A DNA stretch of 64,000 bases, from positions 372,001-436,000 of the forward strand of contig MU008195.1 of NCBI GenBank assembly GCA_010909165.1. The letters run 5' to 3'. Positions within the stretch are counted from its first letter, which is position 1; the number at the start of each line of letters is the position of its first letter. Position numbers and translations under genes: made by a program. This document shows positions 13,014 through 36,823 of this stretch, piece after piece. The DNA comes from Anthoceros angustus (Eukaryota > Plantae > Anthocerotophyta). A model generated the notes under the pieces. It searched no databases. It saw only the letters and a list, made by a program, of their open reading frames with translations, and was not told the DNA's origin.

Positions 13014-15491
13014 ATGGGCGGGAGACGCCGGCCATGGATGTTCCTCCTCTCGATCTTCATCCTCATCCTGGCGGGAGGGGCGGAGGGGACGACGAATGCA
13101 ACCGACCTCACGGCCCTGCTGGCCGTGAAAGCCGCGCTGGTGGATCCAACCGGGAGCCTAGTCAACTGGCAGGGGACGATCCTTGCGGCGCCGGGGCGTG
13201 GGCGGGGTAATCTGCGAGCAAAATGCGCAGGGAGTGGGAACGGTGATTGAGCTACGTCTCTTCCGCATGGGGCTGCAGGGCGTGCTGGCTCCGGAGGTCG
13301 GGAATCTGCAGAACCTGGTGACACTGGATGTGATGTGGAACAGCATCTCGGGGAGCTTGCCACCCTCCATCGGCAACCTCCCGCTCCTCCAGCTCCTGCT
13401 ACTGAGCGGCAACAACATGACAGGCCCGCTGCCTCCCGAACTGGGCCGGCTCGCGACCCTCATCCGGCTCCAGGTGGACCAGAACAAATTCACCGGCCAG
13501 ATCCCGACCACCTTCACCAACTTGCTCGCCATCCAGCACTTCCACCTCAACAACAACTCCTCTCCGGCAACAATCTGAGCGGGGTATTGAACGAGTCCTC
13601 CCTCCTGGGGCTCAGGCCGGCGAGCTCCTTCCAGGACATCATCGTGGATTTGCAGAACAACAGCATCACCAACATTAGCGTTCCCCTGCCGAACGTGAAG
13701 CTCTGGCTGTGGAGTAACCCCGCCTGCAGCGGATCCAACTCCGGTTTCACAGAATGCCAAAGGCAGGAGATCGCAGTTTCCTCGGAATTGGACCGCGGGG
13801 ACAACGAGACCGTCAGCAACTGCGCCGACGCTGTGGTTTGCCGGGAGCAGTACCAGGCCGCCTGGGCCGTGGGAGGCCCGCCGTTCAGCTGCTCCTGCAG
13901 GTACCCCGTCACGCTCCGCCTCCGGCTCAAGAGCCCCAGCTTCACCCTCTTCGCGCCCTTGGTGAGCAGATTCGAGAGCCACATCGCGGGAGCCGTGAGC
14001 ACAGTGAGCAACGCGACGGTGTCTCTCATCCCCGAGCAGGTTCACGTCCGGAACTACACATGGCAGGCGGGGAAGGATGCTGCTGGATCTGCAGCTCTTC
14101 CCGACCCGGATGACAGGTTCCAGCAGACGCAGGCGGACGTGGTCTTCACGCTCTTCGCGACCTGGAAGCTTCCGGAGGAGCCGCACTTCGGGCCGTACGA
14201 GTTCATGCTGTGGATCCCGGGGTGTATGGCTCCGTGAGCGAGATCGCCGGGGGATGGGGACAGGGAGGGATCGGGGTGGGGGTTGTGGCGGGCGCGGTGG
14301 CGGCGGCTGTGGCTGTGGCCGTGGCGGGCGCGGTGGCGGCGGCTGTGGCTGCCACGGTCGTCCTGGCGTTCGGGGTTGGGGTTTGGGTGGTGAGGAGGAA
14401 GGGAAAGGGGAAGAGGAAGGCAACGACCATCAGGCGCGGACCGCTGGGCGGCGACGGCAGCAGCGTGCAGATCACGGGGTGAAGGAGTTCACCTTCGGGG
14501 AGCTGAGCGAAGCGACTGATGGATTCAGCGAGGAGCGGAGCATCGGGCGGGAGGTACGGGAGAGTATACTATGGGGAGCTGGCGGAGGAAGGGATGGTGG
14601 CCATCAAGCGCGCACAGGAGGGGAGTTTGCAGGAAGCCACGAGTTCTACACCGAGATTGCGCTGCTGTCGCGGGTGCATCACCGGAACCTGGTGAGGCTG
14701 GTGGGGTATTGCCATGACCAGGAGGAGCAGATGCTGGTGTACGAGTACATGGAGGGGGACGCTGCGGGATAATCTGTCCGGAGGAGCAGCCGGGGCTGGA
14801 TCTCCAGGCTCGCCTGCGCATCGCCATGGGGAGCGCGAGGGGGATAGCTTACCTTCACAACGAGGCCAACCCGCCGATCTTCCACCGGGACATCAAGGCC
14901 ACCAACATCCTGCTGGACCACAAGCGGAATGCCAAGGTGGCGGATTTCGGGCTCTCCAAGCTGGCGCCCGCGCCGGACCAGGAGGGATCTGGGCCGGGGC
15001 ATGTCTCCACCGTCGTGAAGGGGACGCCCGGGTACCTGGACCCCGAGTACTTCCTCACCCACAAGCTCACGGACAAGAGCGATGTTTACAGCTTCGGGGT
15101 CGTGCTCCTGGAGCTCATCACCGGGCTGCACCCCATCTCCCACGGGAAGAACATCGTGCGCGAAGTGAACACGGCCTTCGAATCCGGCACCGTGCTGGAC
15201 ATTGTGGATCCTCGCATGGGCCCCCTACCTGAGCTCATTCACCCGCTGGTGAGCCTCGCCGTGAGCTGCTGCCAGGACAACCCCGATAAGCGGCCCGGCA
15301 TCGTCGAGGTGGTGCGGGACCTGGATGACATTTGGCACACCATGCCCTGGGGCGTCTCCACCGATACTGAGGGTTCAGCGCGTGTGCACTCCAAGGGGCC
15401 TCCGCGAGCCCGCTTTCAGGATGATAACTCCGACATCTCCATTGCCGGCGGGATCACCAGCGGCACAGTTATCGACGTCATTCCCCGATAG
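13014..15491 (+). CDS. LRR-VIII-1 RLK copy 2 (A N-terminal LRRs fused to B ectodomain, TM and kinase; about 140 codons shorter)
   Basis: Matches A to NNNSLSG (13569), then a distinct [14 protein letters not shown]... ectodomain and B-type kinase. Confidence 0.85.
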
Positions 15492-15692
15492 TACCAGAAG
15501 TGCATGAGCCAAACACGGCATCATAATCTTGTATTTCCACCAGTCTTCCATGACTGAGATAAGCCTGGCAATGCTAAAGCGTTGCTGCAATTTGTGATGC
15601 CACAAGTTGCGAACACAAGACGCTGAAGAGTGAAATGCTGAAGTGATTCAACTGTTAAGCCCTCTCACAAACCGCAAAATCATGAGGTTTCT

Positions 15693-15779
15693 GGTGTCAG
15701 CTAGGGCGAAAGACTATGCTTCTGTGTTCATCATGGCGGCCAAGCCAACTCCGATGAACTATGCTTTGCATCATCCACC
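15693..15779 (-). ncRNA. U80: U80/snR60-type C/D snoRNA (unit 2)
   Basis: Copy of 3505-3593 with 1-nt indels. Confidence 0.75.
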
Positions 15780-16411
15780 AGCCGCTTAGACTAGCAGTCA
15801 GAAAGGAAAAGAAAAGTTACTCACACATGTCAGGCGACGATATCGTAGAGGCCTCTCGGATGTATGAAGCCTAAAAACTTCATACGCCAGAACACAAGTT
15901 ACCAGCAGCAATAGATACCATGAATGACGCTGGCACCTGCAACCGAGTCTGAATGCAGACCTTCTGCGCTGGAAAAGCATGTTGCGTTCCGTCATTCATC
16001 ATCTGCCACCAACACAAACAGTGACGACTCAACCGTTACCTACATCTATATGTGCCAAACCGGTTACCTTCACCCATTTACAGAGAATTAAGGTGAAGAT
16101 CTGGCAGCCCCGTACAACACACCACAAATTGCCAAACAGCACCCACCAAGACCTACTCCAAAAATGTGTTGACCTTTAATTGCTGGCTACATTGCGCAAT
16201 TCTGTGATAAAACACCATTCAGCACTGAGGGAACAAAAGGAGCTTGATGCCACTCCCATCCCTAACAAATTGTCACTGCACCATGTTAGACACCTTCCGT
16301 CAGCAACCGATATCACTCAAGTAGCCTCAGCTGCACGACAGGCAGCGACAGCTCCTTCACTTAGAAGATTGTGTCATTCTCTTAATAGCTCGCATACGTT
16401 GTGCCTCAACA

Positions 16412-16507
16412 TTAGCTGCCACCTTCGTACGTGATAGACAACTACCAACACAGAGATGCTAATCCCTAAAGGTTGGCGAGACAACTGAGATCTTGGTCGT
16501 CAATCAT
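16412..16507 (-). pseudogene. OST4: OST4 pseudogene (unit 2)
   Basis: Same lesions as 4229-4324. Confidence 0.85.
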
Positions 16508-16840
16508 CTGCGTATGACCAAGCAATCAACAAAACCACCACAAACATACACACAACCGACCCCGAAGGACCCTCGCACTCTGAAGAACATCAACCCATCC
16601 AGACCTCACCACCATGAAACCGCCAGGCGACAGGCAGAGGGCCTGCAAAGAAGAAGAAGAAGAATTATCAGAAGTAAGCTACAGATCAGATCTTGGCTCC
16701 GTGGGAAATCCCTACGCAACATACTTTATACAATTTTGACCCAGATTTAGCCAATTCCGTTGTAGTGTAGAGTGGATGGGGTCCGTGGGAAAACTCTAGA
16801 CAAAATAGTTGATAGAATTTTAAATCCAGCCATAATCAAA

Positions 16841-16913
16841 TCCGTTGTAGTCTAGACGGTTAGGATACTCGGCTCTCACCCGAGCGACCCGGGTTCGAGT
16901 CCCGGCAACGGAA
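16841..16913 (+). tRNA. tRNA-Glu(CTC)
   Basis: Complete 73-nt cloverleaf TCCGTTG...GGTTCGAGTCCCGGCAACGGAA. Confidence 0.95.
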
Positions 16914-17272
16914 GGTTTACACTCTTGCTCCGGATGGGAGTTTTCTGAGGTTCAGATGTTTTTCACTTTTCAGTCCGTAGAGTCCGTCGGTGGAGACTTT
17001 GGTTTTCAGAGCCTCTTCGACCACTTTTTCACTCTTCATTCCGCAGAGTGCAAGATTTCAGGCCAAACTCAGCACAGTCCAGATGGTTCACAGGAATCGC
17101 GTCGCAAACCGCACAATCCAAACATTCTTCGAAAGCTCTGGTGTTTTGCAATTCGACTGTGTTAGTCCTCTCTATGGAAGATGTTGGAAGTAAAAATACA
17201 CTTTGGTCCGCTGGCCGGCACAAGTACCTGTCCCGCAATTTCCACATTGGTGGAGCAGGTTTCAGCAGCTGG

Positions 17273-17611
17273 TTAGCGAGGAACGACGTCGACAACGGTG
17301 CCGCTGAGGAGCACGTCGGTGTGGTTGAAGTTGTCGGAGTTCTAATCTTGACTGCGGTGGCGAGGCGGCTTAGCCTGCAGACCTGCTGAAGCCTCGATAT
17401 CTGTGGACACATCCCAGGGCATTGTGCGCCATATATCATCCAAGTCGCGGACCTCCTCAAGAATCGAGGGCCGCTTGTCGAAGTCATCCTGGCAGCAGCT
17501 GATGGCCAGGCTCACCAGCGGCTGGAACACCTCAGACGAGAATGCTCCCATCTGGGGATCCACTACATGCAGCACAGTGTCGGAGTCATATGCCGTCTTC
17601 ACCTCGCGCAC
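17273..17611 (-). pseudogene. Inverted A-type kinase 3' fragment (unit 2)
   Basis: Copy of 5088-5426. Confidence 0.9.
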
Positions 17612-20600
17612 CTTCAGTGCTTATTTACAAAAACACCCCCCATCGGGTATATTCCCCAATCGAAAATTCCAGTCCACCCCTAATCTAGTTTGAGTGTGCA
17701 AAGCCTATCACAGCCACAGGAATTGGAGCCTCTCCTTTCCTCCGTGATGGCTTTCTTTCGCCAGGTTTTCATAGCTCTGCACAAAGTGCTATTATAGTTC
17801 TGCAGAAAGCGCTACTATAGCTCTTCGAGCTGGCTAACGCTATTTATGGGATGACTATATGTGATTAGCGACTTCTTGGCACCGGTGATAGGTAGGCCCT
17901 TCATCATCCCTGATCACAATATTATTAATAGGTAGTTAGGAAAAGGCATTCGAGGACTAGGACTTCTCTTTACTATTAGTCCTTTTGGGTTGTTCCTCCT
18001 CGGACTTGAGGGTAGATGGGATTCCTCATCTAGCCTATTAATAACGTCTACTCTTCTCTCCTTTAGAGGTCCCATTCGAGGTGTCCGATTATATTTTCCC
18101 TATTTAAAACTAATAATAATATTATAAACTTTAAAATCAAAAATACCCAAAAAGAAAAATTTAAATTTTGATTGATAGGTTTCACTAAAAATAATTTTAC
18201 CACTTCTCTATATAGTTGTTTGAAAGCTAGCACTCTCTCTAAGCAACATCAAAAACCTCTACCTATCATAAAGGAAAAAGCCTAGCTTAAGAGTCTTCAA
18301 TCACACCTAAAAGTCTATTATGCTTTGAAATAATCGATTCTTTTTCTTTCTTTTTAATATTTTTAGTAAAAGAATTAGAAATCCCATTTAGGAGGTGAAA
18401 ACTAACATGAATATATGTTTCAAAAGGTCCCAATTACCATTTAGGAAAAGTCCCATTTATTACATTGTAAACTAAAGGGAGTAGGATGGGAGGTCCCATT
18501 TAGAGAGGAATCCAATTTATAGAGTTCGAATTAGAGGGGCCGATCGTATGGTGTTTTGAATTAAAGCCCCCGCTACTTCTACATCAGACATATATGTTGG
18601 TGCTTTCCATTCACACTTACACTTTCCACCACATAGAGCTGCAAAGTGAAATCATAGATCTCGTGCCCATGTGCCGAACGAGGGTTGGAATTCGCCCTTA
18701 CACATGGCCACAATAGCCAACCTCTCCGGATCCTTGTCGACCACTTGTCCAAGGCGCTAGCTCCTTGTTCACTTTGCGTTCCTTGACTTTGTACCATGAG
18801 TTACCCTATAGGAGCAATCGCCTAGGGTGAAAACTATATAACGGCACACTAGTTAAACACTAAGCTGCGACTAGCTTGTAGTGTTGTTCCATGATATCCT
18901 TTCTTTCAATCCTAATTAAGAGTTGGTGTATCGCTTTCCGTTAGATGTGACCACGATTCCGTCAAGCAAAGGTGGGCTGGAAGAAGGTGCTGTCAGATTG
19001 GACACAGGTGAGATGGACGACACAATTAAAACACGCCCTCCACCCCTCTCCACCTGGACTAAGAAGCAGCGATAATTGCAGATGATGGTCTCAAGTGCTG
19101 TTGCTCAAATGGTTCAGTATGCAACAATCAAAGTCTGCATGCAAGTAGGGACTATACATGCAAGCCTGGCAACTAAAAAGCAGGCCATTGTTAAGAGATA
19201 ACTCTTGATATTAGAAAGTTTTTGAAATAAACTATAAATAAAGATAGAATAGAACTCAACTACAATAATATTATAACCATAGTTTCAAATATATTTCTCA
19301 ATAAAATACCTATTCAATGTATAAAGAGCTAATGAGGTGATAATTGTATAAAATTATAATGAGAGTTGCCATTGTACCATACGCGATAATGCGTGATTTT
19401 TCCTTTTAAATTCAATGGGTTCATATTAGAAACATGACCCTCCTTGACATTTGACATAAGCGAGATTGATGTTTTTAAGACTTGCGCTAACATCAAGAGC
19501 TCTAATTCGCCACCCACTCGTGACCATACTCATCCTCTTAATATAATTGTCTATGTCGCCTCTACTAAATCTTTGTAGGTATCTCGATGGCTTTCTAATT
19601 CGGTCATAGCCCTTTTGCGTAAAACATCTGACACGCGGCCTTGACTAGCGTTATCTAACTTCCCATAAAAGTATGCCCCAGCGACAGCTCTGAACAAACA
19701 TTTTCCATCCCCTTCAACATGAATGATCTTGTATTCATTTGGTTGCAATATTTTCCTATCAATGGGTGATGTGAAACTCTCTGAAACAACCTTCGATTTG
19801 GCTGCACTGCGTTCATGTGGGATCTTTGCAAGTGTGAAGCTCTTTGAAACAACCTTCGACTTCTCTAAACTAGTATTGCCGCCTCCGTTCACATGGGATT
19901 CTTGCGGATGTGCATCTCTTTGAAACAACCTCGGACTTTCGAACCAATATTTGGTTGTGTGTGATCTTTGCTTTTTTTACGCTCTAATATAGACAAATCT
20001 TTCTTTGAATCAAAATCGGAAGGAGAGAGTTTTCTCTTGGCGCTTGATTGAACCATCTTTAAAAATATCATATCATATACAACACAACATATATAGCCTT
20101 CAACATGGGGCTTACGACCTTGGTCTTTGAATATTGTAAATATATTGATTAAAAGGGGCTTAAGACCTTGGTCTTGAACTTTGTAAAAACTTAAAATAAA
20201 AGAATGGGCCATGCATATGCATTCTACACACAAAGCAGTTGCTTCTCCCTATACACTTGTACTATATGTAGCTTTGTGTGCCAAGAACACTACGCGAGTT
20301 GCTAATAAAGGGCTGGGATTACGTTAAACTAGTCCGGGTTTGGTTAATCAATGAACTTGCTAACGATTGCAAATACTGTCACGGGGAAATAAAAATGCGA
20401 GTGAGATTGAAAAGCTTCGCTCAAGAGGGACTCCCCGAATTGTGCTTGGTGCAATTCTATATTCGAAGCAATTGGGCAACACACTGGCGAGTTTTCGTTG
20501 TACAACCACTGGGCACAACAAACACAAGTTGGTTGATAATACCAGCTTGAATTAAAGCCAGTCTTGCTATTTCTACATCCTATGGTTGTAGTGTTAGTGC

Positions 20601-20830
20601 TTTCCAGCTCACACAGAGCCCCCAGAGTGGAAGCACAGATCTCTGTACCCATGTGCTGAACGAGGATCGGACGTGGCCACAGCCACGTCCTGTCTTGCAC
20701 GTGGCCACAATAGCCAACCTGTCCGGGTCCTTGCTGACCAGCTTGTCCAGAAGGCGCAGCTCCAGCTCCTTGTTTAGCTTGCAGTTCCTTGACTTTGCAC
20801 CACGAGTTACCCTATAGGAGCAATCGGCAT
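17612..20830. mobile_element. AT-rich TE-like island (unit 2 copy)
   Basis: Collinear copy of 5427-8730 with many small indels. Confidence 0.45.
19329..20071 (-). pseudogene. OTU4-like protease, unit 2 copy, frameshifted (real or error)
   Basis: GDGKCLFRAV and YNGNSHY are present but in different frames. Confidence 0.7.
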
Positions 20831-21235
20831 GCTGCAGGAATGGTGGCTTTGATGAATGCTAGCGTCAATGAATGCTAGCACCATCAAAGCACGGAATGCT
20901 GGCTTCATCGAAGCAGGAACAGAAGAAGAAGAATAACATCTTAGACTAAGCAACGAACATGAAGGACCATCTCAAAGCCCAGGACCTTGAGCACACCGTT
21001 CGGACATCCAGCACAAAGATCCGTGCAATCACGAGGCCAATTTCTCGAAAGTGGAAATCGTGCAGTCGCAAGTTTCTCCGCAACCGATGTGGGGATTTCT
21101 GTGCACAGGCCACCATTTCTGTACACAGGCCAAGCATTGCTGCAATTTGTGATGCCACAAGTTGCGAACACAAGACGCTGAACAGTGAAACGCTGGAGTG
21201 ATTCAACTGTTACACCGCAAAATCATGACGATTCT

Positions 21236-21322
21236 GGTGTCAGTTAGGGCGAAAGACTATGCTTCTGTGTTCATCATGGCGGCCAAGCCAACTCCGATGA
21301 ACTATGCTTTGCATCATCCACC
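21236..21322 (-). ncRNA. U80: U80/snR60-type C/D snoRNA (unit 2, second module)
   Basis: Copy of 9131-9219. Confidence 0.75.
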
Positions 21323-21931
21323 AGCGCCTTAGACTAGCAGTCAGAAGGAAAAGAAACAGTTACTCACTCATGTCAGGCGACGAGGCCTCTCGGAGGTATG
21401 AACCCTATAAAGCTTCATAGGCCAGAACACAAGTTACCAGCAGCAGTGGATATCATGCATGACGCTGGCACCTGTAACCGAGTCTGAATGCAGGCCTTCT
21501 GCGCTGGAAAAAGCATGTTGCAGTCCGTTATTCATCATCTGCCACCATACCTTAACAGTGACGACTCAACCGTTACCTGCATCTATATGCGCCAAATCGG
21601 TTACCTTCACTCATTTGCAGAGAGCTAAGGTGAAGATTTGGCAGCCCATAACACACCACAAATTGCCAAACAGCACCCAGCAAGACCTACTCCAAAAAGT
21701 GTTGACCTCTAATCGCTGGCTACATTGCGCAATTCGGTGACAATACACCATTCGGCACTGGGGAACAAAGGGGCTTGATGCCGCTTCTACCCTAACAAGT
21801 TGTGAGGGCCCTATGTTAGACACCTCCGTCAGCAACTCGAGTAGCCTCAGCTGCACCACAGGCAGCGACAGCTCCTTCACTTAGAATATTATGTCTTTCT
21901 CTTCATAGCTCGCACACGTTGTGTCTCAACA

Positions 21932-22041
21932 TCAGCTGCCACCTCAGTACTTGGGATCCGCCACCACATAGTGATAGACAACTACCAACACAAAGATGCT
22001 AAAAGCTTGGCGAGAAAACCTAGATCTCGGTCGTCAATCAT
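21932..22041 (-). pseudogene. OST4: OST4 pseudogene (unit 2, second module)
   Basis: Same lesion as 9833-9942. Confidence 0.85.
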
Positions 22042-23246
22042 CTGCGAATGACCAAGCAATCAACAAAATCACCACAAACATTCACACAACCTACCCCAAA
22101 GGGCCCTCGCACTCTAAACAACATACAAACCATCCAGACCTGACCACCATGGAACCGCCAGACCACAGGCAGAGGGCCTGCAAAACAACATCAAAGAAGC
22201 GGTACAGATCGGATCATACCCTTGCCGACAGAACGATTGCCCTCTGAAGACTGTCAGATGCTCCAAGAGAAACACCTGGAAGACGTGATTCCCCAAGACA
22301 ACCGAACGAAACCCTACTACTACCGCAACGGATGTGGGGATTGCTGTACACAGGCCACCATTTCCTAGACTCCCTGTTGTGAAAGGCAGAGCTGGAGGTG
22401 TAGCTCCCATTTTCGACACTCAGCAACAGAAGGTGAAGACTGCCCAGATCTGCACCTCGTCGCCAACAACAGTGGCGAGGGGATGCCACTGCAACCGAGC
22501 AGGAGCTAGAGGAGAAAGCATTGAAGCACCATTTTGACAGACAACACTGGACGAAGGCCCTTTCAACAGTTGCGACAAACTAGCTAACAGTCCCTCCTGT
22601 CCGGCCCTGCAGATCTTGGCAAATCCCTGCTGGCCAGGCGTCACCCACTGTACGAGTTGCAACCTGGGCGCGACCAAAGTTGAATAATCGGGCTCCAGGA
22701 CGTGCACCGTCGTTGCCCACAGGCTGCCAAAAGCGAGTCTGCTTCAACGAGTCGGCCGCCGAGATTGATTGAAAGACCTTGAGCATAAGCGTGTTACCGC
22801 GTACCTGCTACATTCGTAATTCCCTTTGACCCCAGGAATGACGCGACAGGATGTTAGAGAGATCAAGCGTCATGCCACAGACCTGACCAGAAATGGAGCA
22901 CTCAGGAAGTGCTGGCAGCGATGGCACATAGTATTGTCAAGAGCCAACACCGAGAAAGCAATTGAAAACCTCAATCGACATAGACGACGTAGCCCAGCCT
23001 GACATGGAGAGAGAGACACAAGGTTGGTGCTGCAGCCATCGCCGACAAGAGAAGAACAGGGTGGTGTGCGGAGGTATGTTGGCTGGACGTGGGAGACACT
23101 TGGCTGACACATGGTATTCCAAGGCTTGCAAACGAGTCTGAGATTTGTAGACAAGCAACACATCATGCTACAAGGCAAGTAGCTTTGCTTTCACATTTCC
23201 CATGGTGTGCCCCAGCTTTGTCCAGGTGAGGATTGGGGTTCCTGTT

Positions 23247-23927
23247 CTAGGACTGCAGCCATACACGATCCGAAGCCTCTGGGCACCCCGCCATAGAACT
23301 CATCCACCTTGGCTCCGTCCCGGTAGAAACGGAACGTTGGAGTACCGTACATCCTGTGTGGTGGCCTCGCATTTGTCGATGTCGGCATACACAAAACGGA
23401 GGATGGATACTCGTTGCTCAGGTTGCAGAAAGTGGGAAGCATTTGCTTACACGCGTGGCACCTGAGGCAGAAGCAATCCGTGTGCCAGGGCTGAGCATAC
23501 CAGACCAGCAGAGCATGCAACTCAGAACAGAAATGCATCCAAAGCATTCAACTCGGGAAAAGCACACGGATCAACTCCACCCACGGCTTACCAGGACGCT
23601 CCGTAATTCACTACAGCCTGCACAAACGCGACGAAATCCAATCAAATCAAACGAGTTCCACATCACCAGCTCACTAACCGACGGTTGCAGGAGCAAGAGA
23701 GGGAAAAGACTCACACGCCGCTTGCAAGCCTTGGCATTGGACAGGATCTCGGTGAGCTGCTCGTCCGTTGTTGCAGTGACGAGATTGCCATGGAAATTCA
23801 CGGGCAGGGCAAACCCTGCCGCCTCTTCCAACACCTTCTGAGGCACCGGCGCACACGCCATCTTCCCTCCTCCTGGTGCTGCTGCTGTTGCTAACCCTAG
23901 ACCAGGATTCCCTTCCTTGCTTTCCAT
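23247..23927 (-). CDS. Thioredoxin-like 3-3 family protein (unit 2)
   Basis: MESKEGNPG...NFHGNLVTATTDEQL, WCHAC, TPTFRFYRDG. Confidence 0.8.
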
Positions 23928-25106
23928 CGCAACGGAACCTGGCCCCAACCAGAAGATGTACAACGGACAATGACAGTCTTGTTTCGTCCCTCCAATAGGT
24001 TAGGTCATCCCATCACTGTCGAAGGGCATCCGCACCAACTCCACCCCATCTCCTTGTCGCCTGCGAATGCGAGACATGCCATTACCCGTTCCTTTCCTTC
24101 CTTTCATTCCCTTCCCGTCCCGGTCTGCGGGCCCTATCTCCGCCTTGTCCTTCATCCGCCAGCTCGAAAGAGCTCTTCCTCCCGGTAGCAACAACAGCAA
24201 CACATTCCCCGGGATCCCACATTTGCTAGCCGGCATCTGCACTCCGCAGACCGCCGGAAGCCGGGATCCGTCACTGTGATAAGATGCGCATTGGCAAGCG
24301 AATGTGGAGGGCCGGGTACGAGGCCGCATCCCATCCGGTTGCTGCCACATCTGAGGCATCCCCGCAAACGACGACACACGACGTCACCTTGCTTCTGCCG
24401 ACCCGCTACTTCCGCACTGGCAGGCCGGAAGATCCGAGGAAGGAGAAGCCCGTCTCTCTCTCTTCCACTCAGTCAAGCCACGCAAATGCAGTGGCAGCTC
24501 CATTCCGGCCGGATCTTTACTGGCCCGGTCCTGTGGACTGTAGCCAGCGGTCAATGAGGCCGCCGGCTTCACACGCCTGGCGCCAGGCAGTTGGGTCCTC
24601 CCTCCCCATTTGCATGCCGTTCGCCCCCACGGAAGCCTGGAAGCTGCGTGCTTTGAGCTTTTTGTGAGATAGCTCCTTGTTGTTGTGTGTGTTTGTGGAC
24701 GTTTGAATCCCCTCCTTGTGATCTACATCATCCTTTGTTTCTTGTGATCTGCATCATCCTCTGCTTCATTCGTCTCCTTGCGTCCGATTGCGCTGCTGCT
24801 GCTGCCGTAGGACGAAGCTGCCTCCAATTGTTGTGCTGTTGCTACTGCAAAAGGAGGCATACGCATCCGTCTGTGTTGTTGCTGCAGAAAGAATAAGCTG
24901 CATCTGCATCCCACTGGGGTTGCTGCTGCTGCAGAAGGAGGAATCTGCATCCGATTGTTTTGCTGCTGGTGCGGAAAGAAGGAATCTGCATCCGATTGCG
25001 CTGCTGCTGGTGCTGGACGAAGAAGCTGCATCCAAACCTGGAGCCTGTGAAGCGATTTGGAGTTGGAATTGCATGGGGTGCCTTGATTAAGGAAGAAGGC
25101 TGGATC

Positions 25107-27980
25107 ATGGGCGGAGACGCCGGCCATGGATGTTCCTCCTCTCGATCTTCATCCTCATCCTGGCGGAGGGCGGAGGGACGACGAATGCACCGACCTCACG
25201 GCCCTGCTGGCCGTGAAAGCCGCGCTGGTGGATCCAACCGGGAGCCTAGTCAACTGGCAGGGGACGATCCTTGCGGCGCCGGGGCGTGGGCGGGGTAATC
25301 TGCGAGCAAAATGCGCAGGGAGTGGGAACGGTGATTGAGCTACGTCTCTTCCGCATGGGGCTGCAGGGCGTGCTGGCTCCGGAGGTCGGGAATCTGCAGA
25401 ACCTGGTGACACTGGATGTGATGTGGAACAGCATCTCGGGGAGCTTGCCACCTCCATCGGCAACCTCCCGCTCCTCCAGCTCCTGCTACTGAGCGGCAAC
25501 AACATGACAGGCCTGCCTCCCGAACTGGGCCGGCTCGCGACCCTCATCCGGCTCCAGGTGGACCAGAACAAATTCACCGGCCAGATCCCGACCACCTTCA
25601 CCAACTTGCTCGCCATCCAGCACTTCCACCTCAACAACAACTCCCTCTCCGGCACCATCCCGTCAGGCATCGGCTCTCTCCCGAACGCGATGCACCTCCT
25701 GGTGGACAACAATCAGCTCACGGGGAGCATCCCCCCCGACCTCGCCAACAGCTCCACCCTCGAAATTCTCCAGCTGGACAACAACCCCTGCCTGGCAGCC
25801 CATCCCCGAGCTCCTTCGGCGAACCTGGAAGTTCCTGGCCCTCCTCAAGCTCAGCATGCGGGGTGCCATCTCCAGGGCAACATCCCCTGGCTCCGCAACA
25901 TCCCTCCTCAAGTTCCTGGATCTGAGCCAGAACTCCCTTTCCGGCACCATCCCGGTGCTCTCCCTCCCCAACCTCACCTCCATCTACCTTCTTCCAACAA
26001 CAACTCTCCCAGGACATAGGCGGGCTAACCCTAGGCCCGCTCCCATCCCTCCAGGCCCTCTTCCTCTCCAACAACAACCTGAGCGGGTACGCGGACATCC
26101 CGTCCTGCTGGCGCTCTCCTCAACCGGCACCGGCGCCTTCCCGTCTCAACCCTGGACCTGCAGAACAACCACATCTCCGACTTCAAGGCCGGGAGAACGT
26201 CACGCTCTGGCTGAGCGGGAACCCTAGGTGTTCGGGCGACAGCGCCAATTTCGAAGACTGCAAGGTGCAGTCGGAGAGCAGCTTCCCCCAGCCAGTCCTG
26301 GACTCCGACGGCAACAACAGGACGTTGTCAGACGCGGGCGGGTGCAGCGCTCTCCTTTGCCCCGGCCAGTTCCAGTACTCCTGGGCCGTGGACGGCCAGG
26401 CCTGCAGCTGCAGGCTCCCCGTCACGCTCCGCCTCCGGCTCAAGAGCCCCAGCTTCTCCGTGTTCGCGCCCTTGGTGAGCAGATTCGAGAGCCACATCGC
26501 GGACGCCATCTCCACGGCCAGCAACGGAAACCTCCAGCTTCCCGTGGAGCTGGTGCACGTGCGGAACTATACCTGGCAGCCGGGGCCGAGGGTGGAGCTC
26601 TTCCTCCAGCTCTTCCCGAACGGAACGGAGTTCGTGGCCGCGCAGGCGGAGGTTCTGATCACGCTCTTCGCGACCTGGAAGCTCCCGGACAACAAGGTGT
26701 TCGGGCCCGTGGAGTTGATGGATTTCCTCCCCCGGGTGTACGGCGCCGCGGGGTCCCCGGGGGGCGGGTCCGTTGGGGGCAAGGGCGGGCTCGGGGCCGG
26801 GGCCGTGGCGGGCGCGGTGGCGGCTGCGGTGCTGGGAACGGCGGGGCTGGCGGGGCTGGCCGGGGCGTGGTACGTGAGGAGGAGGAAGGAGAGGGAGAAA
26901 CGGGCGGCGCCCGTCAGGCGCGGCCTGCTGGGCGGCGACCGCAGCAGCGTGCAGATCACGGGCGTAAAGGAGTTCACGTTCCAGGAGCTGAGCGATGCGA
27001 CGGAGGGGTTCAGCGACAAGCGGGGGATCGGGCGGGGAGGCTACGGGAAGGTGTACCATGGGGAGCTGGCGGAGGAGGGGCAGGTGGCCATCAAGCGCGC
27101 GCAGGAAGGGAGCTTGCAGGGAAGCCGGGAATTCTACACCGAGATCGAGCTGCTGTCGCGGGTGCATCACCGGAACCTGGTGAAGCTGGTTGGATACTGC
27201 CATGACCAGGGGGAGCAGATGCTGGTGTACGAGTACATGGAGGGGGGAACGTTGCGGGATAATCTGTCCGCGAAGCCGGGGCTGGATATGGTGACGCGGC
27301 TGCGCATTGCGCTGGGGAGCGCCAAGGGGATCGCGTACCTGCACAACGAGGCCAACCCGCCGATCTTCCACCGGGACATCAAGGCCACCAACATCCTGCT
27401 GGACCGTAAGCGGAATGCCAAGGTGGCGGACTTCGGGCTCTCGAAGCTGGCGCCCGCGCCGGAGCAGGAGGGGTCTGGGCCGGGGTATGTGTCCACTGTC
27501 GTCAAGGGCACGCCCGGGTACCTGGACCCCGAGTACTTCCTCACGCACAAGCTCACGGACAAGAGCGACGTGTACAGCTTCGGCGTCGTGCTGCTGGAGC
27601 TCATCACCGGGCTGCATCCCATCTCGCACGGCAAGAACATCGTGCGCGAGGTGAAGACGGCCTATGACTCCGGCCAAGTGCTGCATGTAGTGGATGCCCA
27701 GATGGGGGCATACTCGTCCGAGGTGCTCCAGCCGCTGGTGAGCCTGGCCATCAGCTGCTGCCAGGACGACCCCGACAAGCGGCCCTCCATTCTTGAGGTG
27801 GTCCGCGACTTGGATGATATATGGCGCACAATGCCCTGGGATGTGTCCACGGATATCGAGGCTTCAGCAGGTCTGCAGGCTAAGCCGCCTCGCCACCGCA
27901 GTCAAGATGAGAACTCCGACAACTTCAACCACACCGACGTGCTCCTCAGCGGCACCGTTGTCGACGTCGTTCCTCGCTAA
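25107..27980 (+). CDS. LRR-VIII-1 RLK copy 3 (parental A type)
   Basis: A 571-aa open frame (26265-27980) holds the ectodomain, TM and complete kinase (GxGGYG, VAIK, HRD, DFG). The 5' LRR part has a few 1-bp indels. Confidence 0.92.
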
Positions 27981-28317
27981 CCTTCTGCTGAAACCGGCTC
28001 CACCAATGTGGGGAGTTGTGGAACGGGTAGATGTGCCGGCCAGCGGACCATACTGTATTTGTACTTCCAACATCTCGCACACATAGGACTGCCACAATCC
28101 CAATTGCGGATCGCTCGAGCTGTCGAACAACTGCTGAATTGCCCGTTTTGCGACCCTACTTGTATGGAACATTTGGACGTAAATGCAAGACAGCGCGCTT
28201 TGTAACAATCCTTCGCTAAACTCTCAGAGGAACGGAAGACTGGCAATGTGACCTGTTCGCAGTAAAAGGCGGCACTTGACGAGAAAAATGGTCTCACAAA
28301 TCACGCGCTTCCAGCCT

Positions 28318-28400
28318 GGTGTCAGCTAAAAGACATGCTAATGTGTTGATCATGGCGGCCAAGCCAACTCGGATTAACTATTGCTTTTGCATCATCCACC
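28318..28400 (-). ncRNA. Degenerate U80-type snoRNA
   Basis: Terminal stem and C and D boxes kept. D guide lacks 6 nt (GGAGCG), D' guide is mismatched, and C' reads ATGATCA. Confidence 0.65.
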
Positions 28401-29045
28401 AAGAGCATAGACGAGCTGACATCAGGGAAGGAGAGGCCAACACACACACACATGTGAAATGACTATATCTTCAGGCCGACGAGGCCGACCGGATGTATGA
28501 AGCTCTCCAAGAGGGAGCTTCACCCACCGTCACACACATCCCCAGCAGCAAAGGATATCATACATGACGCTGGCGCCTGTAACTGATTCTGAATGCAGAT
28601 ATTTTGCGCTAGAAAAGCATGTTGCAGTACGTTATTCATCGTCTGCCACGACCATAAGACAGTGATGACTCAACTGTTACCTGCATCGATATGTGCCCAA
28701 TCGGTTACCTTAACTCATTCGCAGAGAGTTAAGGTGCAGATCTGGCAGCCCTACTGAACACACCAGAAATTGCCAAACAGCGCCGAACAAGATCTACTCC
28801 GAAAATGCGCTAGCCTCTAATTGCAGGATACACTGCGCAATTCGGTGAAAAAACCATTTAGTACTGAAAACAAAAGAAGCTCCATCCCACTCCCATCCCT
28901 GACAACTTTGTCACTACATCATGTTAGAAACCTTCCTTCCGCAATCGAGACACTCGAGTAGCCTCAGCTGCGCCACAGCCAGCGACAGCTCCTTCGCGTA
29001 GGAGGGTATTCGTTATCTTCATAGCGCACTCGTTGTGCCTCAAAA

Positions 29046-29162
29046 CTAGCTGCCACCTTCGTACTTAGGATCCGCCGTCACGTAGTGATAGAAAACCACC
29101 AACACAAAGATGGTGATCCCCAAGAAGTTGGCCAAAAAACCTAGGTCTTGGTCGTCAATCAT
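29046..29162 (-). CDS. OST4: Oligosaccharyltransferase subunit 4 (38 aa), intact
   Basis: [38 protein letters not shown]. The ATG directly follows an acceptor (ATGCAG|ATG) of a likely 5'UTR intron at 29163-29333. Confidence 0.93.
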
Positions 29163-29619
29163 CTGCATATGGCACAAACGATCGACAATCAGCTCACACG
29201 TCCACACAACCGACCAACAGGGCCTTCGCACTCTGAAAAACATCAAACGTATCGACACCGGGCCCCCATGGACCCGCCAGACCACGGCCAAGGAGCACTA
29301 CAAAGAAATATCACACTCGCAGTGCAGATCTTAACCTTGCCGGTAGAACCCTTGCCTTCTCGGGACCGTCCGCATAGGTCGGGCAAGAACCAGAGCCTCA
29401 GAGGTAGTCGCCGCAACAAACAAAAAGAACCTTGCTGCTGCCCTAACCTACCTCAGGCCGGCCCGTATATGTTCTGGTGGCTACTTCAACTGGTGATGCA
29501 TCGTAGGTATGTGATTCATGTGTCCTTCCTTTCCAGGACTTTAAAAATTTCTTGATTAGGTTAACAGAGTTTCTTGACGCGGGGGCCTGAGCGAGAAGCA
29601 TCCAGAGCAGGGAACCATG

Positions 29620-31820
29620 TTGATTCTTGTCTTGAATGCCCTGAGTCGCGATGCGTGCTCCCCGTCGGAGTCGAGGTCTCACAGCAGACCAGGTGCCGCT
29701 GCTTCATCCAATGAAGCCATCACCCGGAAATGGCTTAAGATAACAGGGCTGGGGCTGCCAGGAGGGAAGGACAGCGCTGCTGTGGCTGCCATGATTCTCT
29801 CCAACACCACTTTGAACTTTCTCCATGTAACCAGCTTTATCGTGACGCGGGGGCTGTAGGCACTGCCTCAGAACGGCAGCATCACGGAACTTTAACTGCT
29901 CCACCAGCATTCCCTGGATGAGGAGGAGGTGGATCCTCAGCTGCTGTCAGTCCTGCAGGAGTGCATCGCTGCAGGTGCTGACACTCATGTTTGACAAACC
30001 CTACGGGACGAGCAACTTCACCAAGGAGTTGTTCCAGGGGTTGGAGCAAAACAAGCCTTGCGTCAAGAGGCTGGTGCCGGTTGGCTGGGAGAGGCCTGAA
30101 CTTCGAACTAACTGTGCTCTGAATCACTTCGAACTTGGCAGATTCTTCGTCACACGCGGATTGGGAGCGTTAGCTGAAAACAACACCATCACCATACCTC
30201 ACACGCAGCATTCGAAAGATGATGACATGGATCGTAGGCTGATCACCATCCTTGAGGGGTGCAAGACTGTTCAGGAGATGCGGCTTGAGTTCCTCGAGCC
30301 CTTTGCTTCATCCGAGTTCACCAGGACCTTTTCCCAAGGGTTGCACAACAACAGCAGCATCAAGGCGCTCGTATTGGATGGCTCGGATGGCCTTGATGAC
30401 CACATGTTCCACGACTTGATGATGTTTCTTGGACCTAACTCCAACAACGTTTTGGAGAACATTCCCAGCTCTGGCTTGAGGTAACCGGGCTGCCAGGAGG
30501 CAAGGATAGCGCTGTGGACGCTCCAGGGCTCGCTGAAGCTGTGGCTGCCATGCTTGCCTCAAACACCACTTTGGTGTTCCTCAGGGCATCCGACTTTTTC
30601 TGTGTCGCGCGGGTTGTGGGCACTGCCTCACAACAGCGGCATCACCACACTTCAACTGGTCCACCACCATTCCTCTCCTCGGGAGGAGGAGCTAGATCCA
30701 TCCGCTGCTGTCAATCCTGCAAACTTGCATGAAGCTGCAAGTGCTGGAGCGCACGTTTGAGAAACCCTACGGGCCAAGCAACTTCACCAAGGAGTTGTTA
30801 CAGGGGTTGAAGCTCAACAACCCTCCCGTCAACTAGCTGGTTTTGGATGGCTGGGATGGGATGGGATGGGCTGGGCTGGACGACCACATGTTCCAGGACC
30901 CGATTCGATCTCTGTCCACCAACACCAACCTGGAGCACATCTGTATCACGGAATGCTCCTCGGAAAAGCAAGGCAAAGCCCAACATTTGGCGAAAGCGTT
31001 GAGACATGCGAGACTGAAGCCACCGCTGCTTGCGTTGCTGGCAGAGCCGGAGTCCGAGTCCCCAGCGCTGCAACGACTCCCATCTGACGAGGACCTGTGA
31101 GGGAGCTACTCCGATTGCCAATGACAGAACGGGGAGTGCCAACACTGCGGGGAGCTCTTCGTGTGACGAGCTTGATCTGCAGAATTTGGCAGAAAGAGCT
31201 TTTATTTGAGCCGTCGTCGAGAGATCTTATCGCTCATTGGACTTGCTGGATTTGCAAAATGTGGGATTGAGTGCAGAGGGAGTGGGTGATATCGCTGCCG
31301 CCCTTGGATGCAATGGCACCCCACGACGGTCCTTCGAGTGGGATCTACGGAGGCGATGGCGCTCTTGGGAGACCTAACATCCAACGCAGTACTGTCCAGA
31401 ACGTATGGATGGGAGCGGCTGCGATGGTTTTGGAACAGGTGAAGTACGCAGTGCACTCCACCGCTACCTTGCGATCCTGCCACACCTTGCAACATCTAGA
31501 TATGTCATACACTGGCCTGACTGCCGATGGACTGGGTCGCACAGTTGCAGCCCTGCGGCGTAATCCCAGCACGGTGCTCCGCGTCTTGTATCCTTCTGGA
31601 AACACGAGTATGGCAAAAGGGACTGGAGCCGGACACCTGGCTGAAATCCTTACCACCACTCCCGTACTTCGCAGCCTGGGGTTTTGGGATATGGGGATGG
31701 ATGTTGCGGGAGCATTGTTGAGAGGGAATGCTCTGGCACGAAACACCACACTTCAGTGCCTCACTGTAGGATTTAGAGTGTGGAGCGCAGAGCAGGCAGG
31801 GATGACGACCAAGCTGTGAT
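29620..31820 (+). pseudogene. RNI-like (NLRC3/TORNADO1-like) LRR gene remnant with an internal duplication
   Basis: AVAAM(I/L)xSNTTL, LHNNSSIKALVL, TLQHLDMSYTGLTADG and LARNTTLQCLTV motifs, broken by stops and frameshifts. Confidence 0.6.
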
Positions 31821-32256
31821 CCCAAGCATTCACCCCTGGTATGGCGGACGCAAAGCAGGAGGCTAAGATTTGGAACTTATTAATTTTTTCACACAAAACA
31901 TCTCACAAAAAGACTTATTTACTGGCTCAAGTTTATTGCTTCCAATTTACCACTAGCTCAAACCGTAAAACTTCACATTCAGGACTTGTTTACTGACTCG
32001 CGATATCCTTGGTGATGGTAAAACCTTACATTCATGTACTTTTAATAATTCGTAAGAAGTTCAAAGGCGATAGATATTCCATTGCAACACGTGACAAAAT
32101 GTCATTGGTGAAGCACAAATTGAAGGGTATGGTGAAAATATCCACACTACATTTTAAACTAGATGCATTTAAGCATTTGCACCATTTATCGAGATTTTAG
32201 TCTATTATCGATCAATCTAATTGAATCTATCTATCATTTAGTTTCTTGTCCGTCTC

Positions 32257-32652
32257 TTACTCATTAAAATATACACAAGGTATGGAAGGCAATGTTAAAG
32301 TACGCACAAGATTCATGTCAATTTTGGAAGTTATATCATGAAACATGTCCCATGGTATATTTGAATCTTGATAGTAGAGTTCATCATTTCGCCAAACTAT
32401 AGGTTCACATAACCAACAACATGTATATGGACTATGTTCAGCTGGTAAAATCTCGACATCAGTAACCAACCCTCGTTCCAGGCATGCATTGATAGATGAG
32501 AGGTGATTATTTGGCTCCCATGGATTGGTACTGCCATTATATTTTGCAGTTGCTCTCTTTGTCATGGGATCCCATTTCCATGTTCCCTCACTGTGGTTTG
32601 CAAGATAAGATTCCATTATAATCATCTGGACATCAATTGGAAGGTTGAGCAT
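32257..32652 (-). CDS. 131-aa orphan with an F-box-like N-terminal motif
   Basis: Starts MLNLPIDVQMIIMESYL (LP.E/D...I...L pattern); intronless and AT-rich. A truncated, frameshifted copy lies at 34952-35260. Confidence 0.45.
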   Translation of the reverse strand: MLNLPIDVQMIIMESYLANHSEGTWKWDPMTKRATAKYNGSTNPWEPNNHLSSINACLERGLVTDVEILPAEHSPYTCCWLCEPIVWRNDELYYQDSNIPWDMFHDITSKIDMNLVRTLTLPSIPCVYFNE

Positions 32653-32881
32653 ATGGGAAGTCTGTTAAAGGTCAGAAGAAGTTAGAGCATGATAAAATTA
32701 TAGCAATGGAATACTTTTCATATGACAAACAAACATTTGAAATCAATCTAGGAGGTTACAATAAAAAAAACATATTACTTACAAAGTTGGATTCTTTGTT
32801 GGAAGACATGGCGCCTTGCTCCAATAGATATGCAATATAGATATCACTCGGAAGGAAGGCGTGTATAGATCACTAGATCAG

Positions 32882-33730
32882 TGATGTTGTTTAGCAAGGG
32901 TCGTTAGGCAGCTATAGATTTATGCAGCATAGAGCAATATTTAGAGCAATATTCAAAAACTCTGTACGACAAGTAATAAAATTATAGCGTAGAGAAATAT
33001 TTAAAAACCAATACAAAAAGAAAAGTAATAAGATCACTATAGCGTTGATGTTGTTTAGCAAGGGTCGTTAGGCAGCTATAGATTTATGCAGCATAGAGCA
33101 ATATTTAGAGCAATATTCAAAAACTCTGTACGACAAGTAATAAAATTATAGCGTAGAGAAATATTTAAAAACCAATACAAAAAGAAAAGTAATAAGATCA
33201 CTATAGCAGTGATGTTGTTTAGCTTTGATTGGTTAGGCAACTATACATTTACTTATATAGCATAGAGCAATATTTAAAAAGCCATACAACAAGGAAAGTA
33301 ATAATACCAGTTAGGGAATGATGCATATATAGCATAAAAAATCTTAAAAACGATCCACTGGTTAGGCAACTATACATTTATTTATATAGCATAGAGCAAT
33401 ATTTAAAAAGCCATACAACAAGGAAAGTAATAATACCGGTTAGGGAATGATGCATATATAGCATAAAAAATCTTAAAAACGATCCACCAAAGAGAGTAAT
33501 GATATCCGAGACATAATGTTCCATATATAGCAAAACATGTTTAGCTATGATTGGCTAGGCAGCTATACATTTATTTATATAACGTAGAGCAATATTTAAA
33601 ACCCATACATCAAGGAAAGTAATACTACCCATAAGAGAATGATACATATATAGCATAAAAAATCCTAAAACCCATCCATCAAGGACAATAATGATATCCG
33701 AGACATAATCTTCCATATATAACTAAAAGC
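32882..33730. repeat. Compound minisatellite (164-bp units, then 129- and 193-bp variants)
   Basis: TGATGTTGTTTAGC at 32882, 33046, 33210. GG(T/C)TAGGCA(A/G)CTATAC at 33231, 33360, 33553. Confidence 0.9.
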
Positions 33731-35234
33731 ATTCATTTTTCCCCGCTCCATCTCGTCGCTGAGACTTGGACACCTCCTTCTCCATAGCCTCTAATACTTC
33801 TGCCCGGCGTGCTGTGCTCATGAGCTCCCTGGTGAGTCGCTGCACCTCCATTCTCCACCCCTAGCACAAGACGTCCCTCATCTTGGCAGCTTGCCTCCTC
33901 CCGCAAGGCTCTTACCTCTTGCTCCCGCGTCTCAAGCATTCGCTCCAATGGCCAACATTCGCTCCAATGACCTCGTCAGCCTCCTACCAGCTCGTCCGGA
34001 GTCCTGTAAAGTATATTATGCAGAGTTGTAAAATTGGTAGTTTAGGAGTGGGGTTGTAGGTGAGGTTGTGAACATAATTTTTTTTTTTTGTGAGGAGTGG
34101 GGAGATGGGGGTGTCATGCCATGAATTGTAACCACTAGCAAGACTAAGTGGACACATAAGCAGTAAAGGAGCGAGCGAGGGATACCGTTGACACAAGGCA
34201 TAAGCCATGTGTCAAGACTGATGAATGAGCCCATGTGGGCATGGAATGCATGTATGTATGTGTCATGCATGTGGATGCTATGTGTATGTGCAGTGGCATA
34301 CATGAGCCATGTATGTCTCTTTGACGCATGTAAGGACTGATGATATAGCACACATAGGAGAGGTTCATCTTTTTATATACTCTTAAACATCACAAATATA
34401 TATAAAAGGGACTCTAGGACCAAGGACCTAGGAAATAAGGGGTTATTTCCAAATAGGCATTATTACCAAGGGCGAAGGACTTAATAGCTATGTTACCTAG
34501 GTGCAAAACGATATTTCCATTGATCATCAGGAAGTTAAGCTGCGCGCATCAGCAGGAGATGGGAGGAGCCAGGGCAATATGTATATGTAGAGCAGCACTC
34601 CAAAGCTTTAGTGGATTGTTGATGTTTGTCTAGTAAAGAGGCGGCTATACTTCGTCTCTACGCTGATCATTGTTTTTTTTGCAACTGTTTGGGATCGATC
34701 ACATTCTAGTGCACAAGTCCAAGATTCGAATCATGCTGGATCTCTCACACACGCACACGGGGCCTACTTATGGAATAGAAGACCTATGGTATGAACTTCT
34801 GAAAATCCTTCCATGGGATTCTAGACTTTAAAATCTACCTCTAAATATCAACTTTGCTTGAAATGACTTGGCTATGTAAGGCAGCTTGCATAATTTATGC
34901 GATGTAGTCTAGGAAATCTATTTATCTATCATTTAGTTTCTTATCCGTCTCTTACTCATTAAAATATATACAAGGTATGGAAGGCAATGTTAAAGTACGC
35001 ACAAGATTCATGTCAATTTTGGAAGTTATATCATAAAACATGTCCGTTTGAATTTTAATAGTAGAGTTCATCATTTCGCCAAACTATAGGTTCACATAAC
35101 CAACAACATGTATATGGACTATGTTCAGCGGGTAAAATCTCGACATCTGTAACCAACCCTCGTTCCAGGCATGCATTGATAGATGAGAGGTGATTATTTG
35201 GCTCCCATGGATTGGTGCTGCCATTCTATTTTGC

Positions 35235-35358
35235 AGTTGCTCTCTTTGTCATGGGATCCCACCACATTGTGATTGAAAATTGAAAGATCATTCTATTTGC
35301 TCTCTTTGTCATGGGATCCCACCACATTGTGATTGAAAATTGAAAGATCATTCTATTT
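35235..35358. repeat. 60-bp tandem duplication
   Basis: TTGCTCTCTTTGTCATGGGATCCCACCACATTGTG... repeated at an exact 60-nt period. Confidence 0.9.
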
Positions 35359-36823
35359 CCCTGTTGCTCTCTTTGTCATGTGGTGGCCACTCCCTCGCCC
35401 ATGAAACCTGCAACAACGGAGGCCAGTTACTTCTGGAATAATCTGCAATGTGATCCCCTCAACCATCACGGCCAGAAATTCAGAACCTGCACGTTGCCGC
35501 TGCAAGCACTGCTTCAGGGTCCCCAAGCTTTGCAACTGAGTGTTCAACTTGGTCGCCTCAGCTGATTCATGCCGAATCTGAACAACCTCCTCACTCAACG
35601 CAAATGTGTGATAAACTTGTTCCATTCATTCGTTCATGACTGCTCGTCGAACCCGCTGGTGGAAGATGCAAAGGCATAGTTCACACATACATCGGAGTTG
35701 GCTTTTGCCGCCATGATGAACACCGCAGCATGCCTTCCGCTGCAAGGTGGCACCAGAAGCTCACGATGTTGCGATTTGTGAGAGTGCTGAACAGTTGAGT
35801 CACTTGTGGATTTCACTGTTGTGATTGCAGATTGTTGTCCATAACCTGACAGGCATTGCTACAGCGTATGGTGGGTGACGCCTGGCGAGCAGGCATTTGC
35901 CAGGAAAGTTCTGCAAGGCCGGACAGGAGGGGGTTGTTAACTCGGTTGTTGCAACTGTTGAGAAGGCCGTCCTGCCGCCGTGAGCCGTCCTGCCGACGTG
36001 AAGTGTAGGAGACGACTCCAACCAACTGGTCCAGAGGTTGAAAGGCCCCGCCCTTGCCTCTGTGATGTCCGCCAACATTGTGCTTTGATTTTTTCTCCGC
36101 TCTCGCCTCCTGCGCCCACCTTTTGCACTCGTTGTCAACTGAACCTCGCAAAAGATTGCGAAGCAACACCGCATCCAGCTGTTGCAGCGGCGAGGTCTGG
36201 GACTCTGTCCCGCAGCTGAAGCGGCTCTCATGAGACACGCTCCCGGTGCAATTCTCCAATTGGGCTGCCGCTACACCTACCTCTGCAATTCTCGAATTGG
36301 GCATGCATCCATCATTCCCGGGGTGCAAGTGGAGTGAAGTCCGTTGAGGAAAAGCAGCATATGTCTAGGAGGAACCTCCTGGTACGATGTTACGTGCTTT
36401 TCTGGGAAGCTTGTGCGCATGCGTTCGGAAGCTTTTCCTTTCAGCCCTCCCATTAGAGGGCTTGTAACAAGTGTATTTGGTCTGTTGGGCTGATTTGGGT
36501 GTATTGGGCAATAGTAGCTAGCTGTTGCCCAAATGTTTGTGTTGCCTGAAGGGGAGCTCGTGGGGCAATGCGAGTTACCTCTTCTTTTTGGCCTCAATGG
36601 AAGCTACCTCTTGTTGTCCGCCCTTCCTTCAGCTAGCCCTTGTTGTCCGCTCTTCCTTCAGCATTATTTCCTCTTTCTGACATGTTTCTCTTTGACAGCA
36701 AACAAGCTTCGGCTCTCTTCCTTCTTGGGAAGCTTCTTGGAAAAGGATTTTCTTGGGAAGGGAGTGAGGACAGGAATCAGGAATCTGGTTCGTTGTTTTT
36801 TTTGTCAAAGGAGAGGAAGCGTC

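Follow-up and report, generated by a model that had tools for sequence, protein, structure and literature searches.

The human U80 small nucleolar RNA (snoRNA) is located in GAS5, and for hosts such as GAS5 and UHG a route through duplication and complementary loss has been proposed. To our knowledge, this passage from a protein-coding to a non-coding host has rarely been seen where an intact paralogue is still adjacent. The U80/snR60 family itself is ancient, and is associated in yeast with Am817 and Gm908 (PMC8583080, PMC3511168). For the Arabidopsis members AtU80-1 and AtU80-2, the assigned sites are Am826 and Gm917 of the 25S rRNA (PMC8583080), and nothing in that paper ties AtU80 to OST4. 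The promoters of snoRNA loci and of snoRNA host genes in angiosperms are marked by telo boxes, which are usually accompanied by site II motifs (PMC3022908). Our literature searches on OST4 together with snoRNAs, and on the subfunctionalization of snoRNA host genes, returned nothing relevant. According to the initial annotation of the present DNA, OST4 was not known to have been described as a snoRNA host, and we found no paper linking the two.

Here we analyse a 64-kb stretch of the Anthoceros angustus genome (contig MU008195.1, positions 372,001 to 436,000; hereafter, the window), in which an OST4-like start is followed by a downstream U80/snR60/Z15-type box C/D snoRNA in five modules, all on the minus strand. 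None of the five has both parts intact. Module C (28250-29340) combines an intact OST4 with a dead snoRNA, while modules A1, A2, B1, and B2 combine a broken OST4 with a good snoRNA. This reciprocal decay is the more interesting aspect of the array.

Organization of the module array

A unit of ~12.2 kb is present twice in the window (2125-13569 resembles 14299-25654), and each unit carries one A and one B module: A1 and B1 in unit 1, and A2 and B2 in unit 2. In addition, the segment 1-3296 matches 24620-27973 at 94%. In our alignments, the A and B modules diverge by ~10%, and module C differs from either by ~20-25%. The strand, the order, and the spacing of OST4 and the snoRNA are nevertheless the same in the three lineages A, B, and C, with 719-758 nt from the OST4 ATG to the 5′ end of the snoRNA, and 613-642 nt from the OST4 stop codon to the snoRNA.

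Past position 2800, units 1 and 2 differ by 30 substitutions and 166 gap columns, and the gaps are mostly 1-nt homopolymer deletions in unit 2. This indel pattern looks like the signature of long-read polishing errors, or like a doubtful duplication in the assembly. Since the differences between the units are of this homopolymer type, the “five” modules may effectively be three independent lineages. Upstream of the coding region, modules B and C are alike to ~330 nt before the ATG, whereas the homology of module A extends only to about -190. Module A may therefore lack the first exon and the promoter of OST4.

Module B is flanked by 42-nt direct repeats (8973-9014 and 10224-10265; 93% identical and 1251 nt apart), as if they had been left by a head-to-tail duplication of the whole OST4–snoRNA unit. 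A receptor-like kinase ORF with a kinase domain and an ALE2_N-like domain lies at 26265-27977 on the plus strand, and its LRR-VIII-1 relatives are ~50-55% identical. Copies of this gene lie at ~1-3296 and at 14.3-15.5 kb, a kinase ORF converges on each A or C module, and the 3′ end of the kinase (27642-28154) recurs in inverted orientation at 4915-5426 and 17101-17611. We found no close hornwort kin of this kinase on record, the best matches being ~55% identical. At a distance of ~330 nt, each A-type module has an upstream tRNA-Glu(CUC) gene in the other orientation (4657-4728 and 16841-16913, plus strand). Single-base indels lower the score of the first of these genes, which is 48.9 bits as compared to 63.9. 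Upstream of module C, there is a 77%-identical repeat pair (29779-30090 and 30538-30856), each member of which contains one AAACCCTA telo box (29996 and 30762). An AT-rich island (32000-33500; GC 0.29-0.36), with internal repeats (32225-32574 resembles 34920-35261), separates module C from the LEA_2 genes.

State of the OST4 frames

OST4 is a very small glycosylation gene, and its product is subunit 4 of oligosaccharyltransferase. We surveyed the OST4 frames by six-frame and tblastn searches of the window. The sole intact frame is that of module C (29046-29162, minus strand), which encodes 38 amino acids followed by a stop codon. It scores 60.5 bits against the Pfam family PF10215 (Ost4; cut-off 25), and is 86-89% identical to the OST4 proteins of Riccia, guava, Lonicera, and Xanthoceras. 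The other four minus-strand frames are broken. In module A1 (4229-4324), a TAG occurs at codon 14 and 20 nt are deleted, and module A2 (16412-16507) repeats these lesions. In module B1 (9833-9942), a 7-nt deletion shifts the frame, which stops after 19 codons, and the same lesions recur in module B2 (21932-22041). Because these lesions are substitutions or multi-base deletions common to both units, they are real, rather than homopolymer errors.

In Riccia and the three eudicots, a pyrimidine-rich tract ending in CAG/ATG directly precedes the OST4 start, and the annotated gene models place an intron there. The YAG/ATG junction common to these four plants appears as GCAG/ATG in all five modules. 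Thus, by comparison, the coding exon of OST4 in module C probably starts exactly at the ATG, after the acceptor of a 5′-UTR intron. A 40-aa form beginning with MQM was also considered and rejected, as its extra in-frame ATG falls within the 5′-UTR intron by comparison with the four plants. Database searches returned no exact records of the 38-aa or 40-aa OST4, of a 65-aa upstream-extended frame, of the OTU protein, or of the LEA_2 ORF in the window; the word search for OST4 yielded nothing but annotated OST4 models of excessive length, from angiosperms and Riccia.

State of the U80/snR60-type snoRNAs

The initial annotation had placed a U80-type snoRNA on the same strand 3′ of OST4 in all five modules, and named an Rfam search as one check. 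The linkage holds in all five, and Rfam recognises the element in four. Family RF00309 (snosnR60_Z15, U80/snR60) has a gathering cut-off of 41 bits. The minus-strand copies of modules A1 (3501-3597; 53.3 bits) and B1 (9127-9223; 54.2 bits) have both guides identical to the family consensus. Those of modules A2 (15689-15783; 42.5 bits) and B2 (21232-21326; 43.5 bits) equal A1 and B1, respectively, apart from the same pair of 1-nt deletions, one of which sits in the D guide. These deletions, which lower the Rfam scores, may be assembly errors. Across the whole window, the search at gathering thresholds returned these four RF00309 members (42.5-54.2 bits) and the two tRNA genes, with no further U80-type match beyond the four A/B copies.

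The fifth element (28314-28404, minus strand, in module C) emerged from a permissive Rfam scan of the region 27-31 kb, and, at 20.9 bits (E 5.5), lies below the cut-off. In its D′ guide, 1 nt has been inserted and a C replaced by an A, its D guide lacks 7 nt, and its C′ box reads UGAUCA. It retains box C, box D, and a terminal stem of 7 bp. This snoRNA-like element is, on these features, a relic, not a U80 or a member of the family. Accordingly, the stretch 28250-29340 is, as read from its sequence, best described as an intact OST4 followed by a fossil U80.

A box and stem scan of all of the modules showed one canonical C/D unit each, with AUGAUGC ... CUGA and a 6-7 bp terminal stem; the last base of the C box is C, not A, in every copy. 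The plural “snoRNAs” per module that had been envisaged are thus reduced to one. The candidate for a second C/D snoRNA on the minus strand of each module (28565-28651, 3741-3827, and 9358-9445) has a perfect AUGAUGA and no CUGA D box, and was rejected as a canonical unit. Its sole and best Rfam match scores 16.9 bits, and it contains no compensatory pairs. This conserved element, whose ends pair over 5 bp (UGGCA/UGCCA), may be what is left of a second C/D snoRNA, or a chance resemblance. For the interval from the OST4 stop codon to the snoRNA, an H/ACA or otherwise structured RNA was likewise rejected (fold z-scores of -0.9 and -1.2, no H box), as was a sixth snoRNA-like match at 35636-35736, where Rfam finds nothing.

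Between A and B, the snoRNA is the least diverged segment: 3 of 96 positions differ, as compared to 98 of 941 elsewhere (p = 0.018). This is a sign of constraint on the snoRNA, but gene conversion, or constraint confined to one of the two lineages, could also produce it. A base just in front of box D, G in A and A in B, tells the copies apart. The module C relic differs at 14 of 91 positions, which is not significantly lower than its flanks (p = 0.11). It contains a 22-nt internal stretch identical to A and B, against a background divergence of ~22%.

Splice-like signals and the 3′ boundary of module C

Are the snoRNAs enclosed in introns? According to the initial annotation, four modules carry a clean intron of the form GTGAGT...polypyrimidine...AACAG around the snoRNA. 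The motifs and coordinates are as described, and the pyrimidine tract at the acceptor is missing. The predicted minus-strand introns span 3464-3639 in A1 (176 nt), 9102-9265 in B1 (164 nt), 15652-15824 in A2, and 21207-21367 in B2, each running from GTGAGT to AACAG. In these four modules, GTGAGT precedes the snoRNA by 41-42 nt, and AACAG follows it by 25-37 nt. For random 97-mers in this window, a GTRAGT occurs by chance at most 60 nt upstream in 1.1% of trials, and an acceptor-like AG occurs downstream in 47%; the donor is thus informative, and the acceptor-like AG is not. Moreover, pyrimidines constitute 0.40-0.50 of the last 20 nt before the AACAG acceptor, which is no tract; the pyrimidine tract of the predicted introns lies just after the donor. 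Acceptor-like sites richer in pyrimidines are found ~28 nt beyond AACAG (CTCTTCAG in A and CTGTTCAG in B).

Module C had been credited with a degenerate donor and a kept acceptor. The former description is accurate: in the alignment, a (GT)n run (28437-28456, minus strand) occupies the position of the GTGAGT donor in A and B. The latter has to be withdrawn. The homology of module C to A and B stops ~15 nt past the snoRNA, where the divergence jumps to 64-76%, and local alignment of the downstream sequence of C with those of A and B is no better than with shuffles. Since the homology ends there, the AACAG at 28253-28257 is unrelated sequence, and not a retained acceptor. The sequence downstream of this break joins the 3′ flank of a receptor-kinase copy.

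Within the 3′ region of OST4 in module C, a 68-nt intron had been proposed at 28864-28931 (minus strand). Its predicted acceptor is good (TTTTGTTTTCAG/T), while its donor is weak (AAG/GTTTCT). Another short candidate intron, from CAG/GTAAC to TTTTCYAG, is predicted in all of the copies.

Promoter and 3′-end motifs

Within the ~640 nt from the OST4 stop codon to the snoRNA, there is neither an AATAAA nor a TATA, telo-box, or site II motif. The lack of AATAAA proves little, given the loose poly(A) signals of plants. The window contains six AAACCCTA telo boxes, four of which precede modules B1, B2, and C by 0.3-1.6 kb; no site II motif was detected in the module regions scanned. As for a plant snRNA-type USE, the TCCCCACATCG-like strings beside module B are part of its 42-nt direct repeat and are not followed by a TATA motif, and this candidate was rejected.

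OST4 and U80-type loci elsewhere

As a further check, the initial annotation had pointed to the regions downstream of OST4 in lycophytes, ferns, and bryophytes. The loci of one liverwort and three eudicots hold no counterpart. At the Rfam cut-offs, there is no snoRNA within 6-10 kb of OST4 in Riccia fluitans, guava, Lonicera, or Xanthoceras, and the Riccia locus has none even at E <= 1. In order to view the pairing from the side of the snoRNA, we searched metagenome contigs for both of the conserved guide elements, and obtained 119 matches at 114 environmental loci. On the contig sequence available, no OST4-like ORF was found near these 119 U80-type matches, 94 of which had at least 800 nt of upstream sequence. 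The absence of the pairing from the four land-plant loci and the 114 environmental loci indicates that the OST4–U80 linkage, as judged from these sequences, is lineage-specific.

The eudicot loci have a different small conserved neighbourhood, in which a tRNA-His(GUG) gene accompanies OST4 on the same strand (guava L001, 8832-8903; Lonicera L117, 12821-12902; Xanthoceras L118, 6532-6604). This gene lies just upstream of OST4 in guava and inside the OST4 5′-UTR intron in Lonicera and Xanthoceras, and it is absent in Riccia and in the present window.

Proposed history of the array

How did the intact OST4 and the intact snoRNAs come to be parted? We give a probability of about one half to a history in which duplication parted the two outputs of an ancestral OST4/U80 gene confined to this lineage, leaving one copy with the protein alone and turning the others into non-coding hosts of the snoRNA. 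The linkage, the states of the ORFs and snoRNAs, the splice-like motifs, and the homology boundaries are all visible in the DNA, and from them we infer co-transcription, splicing, and an order of events. That OST4 and the snoRNA once belonged to one transcription unit is suggested by the constant strand, order, and spacing in three lineages, by the consensus donor, and by the lack of an intervening AATAAA, TATA, telo-box, or site II motif. The telo boxes upstream (four of six) and the low divergence of the snoRNA (p = 0.018) also count in favour of this history. The weak acceptor, the missing upstream homology of module A, and the absence of the pairing from the other OST4 loci and from the environmental U80 loci count against it. 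A shared OST4–snoRNA transcript is plausible in the ancestor only. The initial proposal that one transcript yields both the 38-aa OST4 and the snoRNA fits no present copy, as the intact OST4 is joined to a dead snoRNA, and the live snoRNAs to dead OST4 frames.

In the ancestor, OST4 would have been followed, ~640 nt past its stop codon and on the same strand, by a U80/snR60-type box C/D snoRNA, most likely released from a 3′-UTR intron or from the 3′ trailer of the OST4 Pol II transcript. A unit of ~1.1-1.25 kb would then have been duplicated several times, and the protein and snoRNA products divided among the copies. Module C would have kept the protein; its original 3′ end, beginning shortly past the snoRNA, would have gone missing along with the donor, and with the intron disabled, the snoRNA would have decayed to a guide-less relic. 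Modules A and B would have kept the snoRNA and the donor while their OST4 frame was lost; provided that their transcription continues, they would be non-coding snoRNA hosts of the GAS5/UHG kind. In plants, introns well downstream of a stop codon trigger nonsense-mediated decay. A possible driver is thus that a protein gene under this regime would gain by shedding its 3′ introns, to which a non-coding host would be indifferent. More tentatively, at somewhat less than even odds, the array may represent a non-coding snoRNA host arising from a protein-coding one, with module C becoming protein-only after the loss of its snoRNA intron, and the others becoming hosts devoid of an ORF, preserved solely for the RNA encoded in the intron. 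If this is true, the array would display, side by side, every stage of a subfunctionalisation that divides a protein from an intronic RNA.

It is rather unlikely, in our judgement, that OST4 and the snoRNA have only ever been neighbours, the U80-type snoRNA being an independent gene with its own promoter, which came to lie 3′ of OST4 by chance and was copied along by segmental duplication. The surplus OST4 copies would then have decayed as ordinary pseudogenes, and the snoRNA copies would have been kept for dosage. Such independence would suit the fact that most plant C/D snoRNAs are non-intronic (PMC3022908, PMC8583080), as well as the absence of the OST4–U80 pairing in the four land plants and at the 114 environmental U80-type loci, the weakness of the acceptor, and the perfect snoRNA of module A, in which the upstream region common to B and C is missing. 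However, the 640 nt upstream of the snoRNA offer no TATA, telo-box, or site II motif for an independent promoter, and a consensus GTGAGT donor lies 41-42 nt before the snoRNA. Furthermore, the death of the C snoRNA exactly where the 3′ end of the module was replaced would have to be a coincidence.

The reading of the A and B modules as silent pseudogenes throughout, with snoRNAs that are intact through youth or gene conversion and a working U80 elsewhere in the genome, is improbable, even though their OST4 frames are dead, module A is without the shared upstream region, and the near identity of units 1 and 2 marks them as recent or as a product of assembly. The evidence for constraint is modest, with p = 0.018 resting on three differences. 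On the other side, both guides of C were lost over a span of time in which A and B, although 10% apart, retained all of their guide and box positions, and the window contains no other U80-type match at the Rfam cut-off. We consider it very improbable that the OST4 3′ region still produces the module C relic, whether as an orphan snoRNA or as one with a new target. Its C and D boxes, its terminal stem extended to 7 bp, and the 22-nt internal stretch identical to A and B would be in keeping with such a product; its mutated C′ box, the loss of both known guides, and a divergence (14/91) not significantly below that of the flanks (p = 0.11) speak against it.

The kind of arrangement described here is known, and the host would be new. 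If transcripts confirm the preferred history, OST4 would be a previously unreported snoRNA host, and the array would provide a dated example of the change from a protein-coding to a non-coding host through duplication and complementary loss. As regards annotation, working snoRNA genes may be what the four apparent “OST4 pseudogenes” represent, and the label U80 should not be given to the snoRNA-like element 3′ of the intact OST4.

Comparison with known systems

The A and B snoRNAs resemble the other members of RF00309 in both guide elements (GCAUAGUUCA and GUCUUUCGCUCCUA), and likewise in their boxes and terminal stem. They differ in their setting: each snoRNA in the window trails OST4 or an OST4-derived exon, whereas most Arabidopsis C/D snoRNAs lie in clusters (PMC8583080). 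Similarly, the OST4 of the window is a member of PF10215, with 38 amino acids and an intron acceptor directly before the ATG, as in the liverwort and the three eudicots; in contrast to the four comparison loci, the OST4 loci of the window adjoin a snoRNA.

The modules share with hosts of the GAS5, UHG/SNHG1, or 3′-UTR-intron type the placement of a snoRNA between candidate splice signals and 3′ of a very short or broken ORF. As in the GAS5/UHG type, it is the snoRNA that is conserved, and the putative host exons of A and B show little conservation. Unlike these hosts, the A and B modules, as hosts predicted from sequence, are still recognisable as decayed copies of OST4, and their intact paralogue belongs to the same array, at a distance of 5-25 kb.
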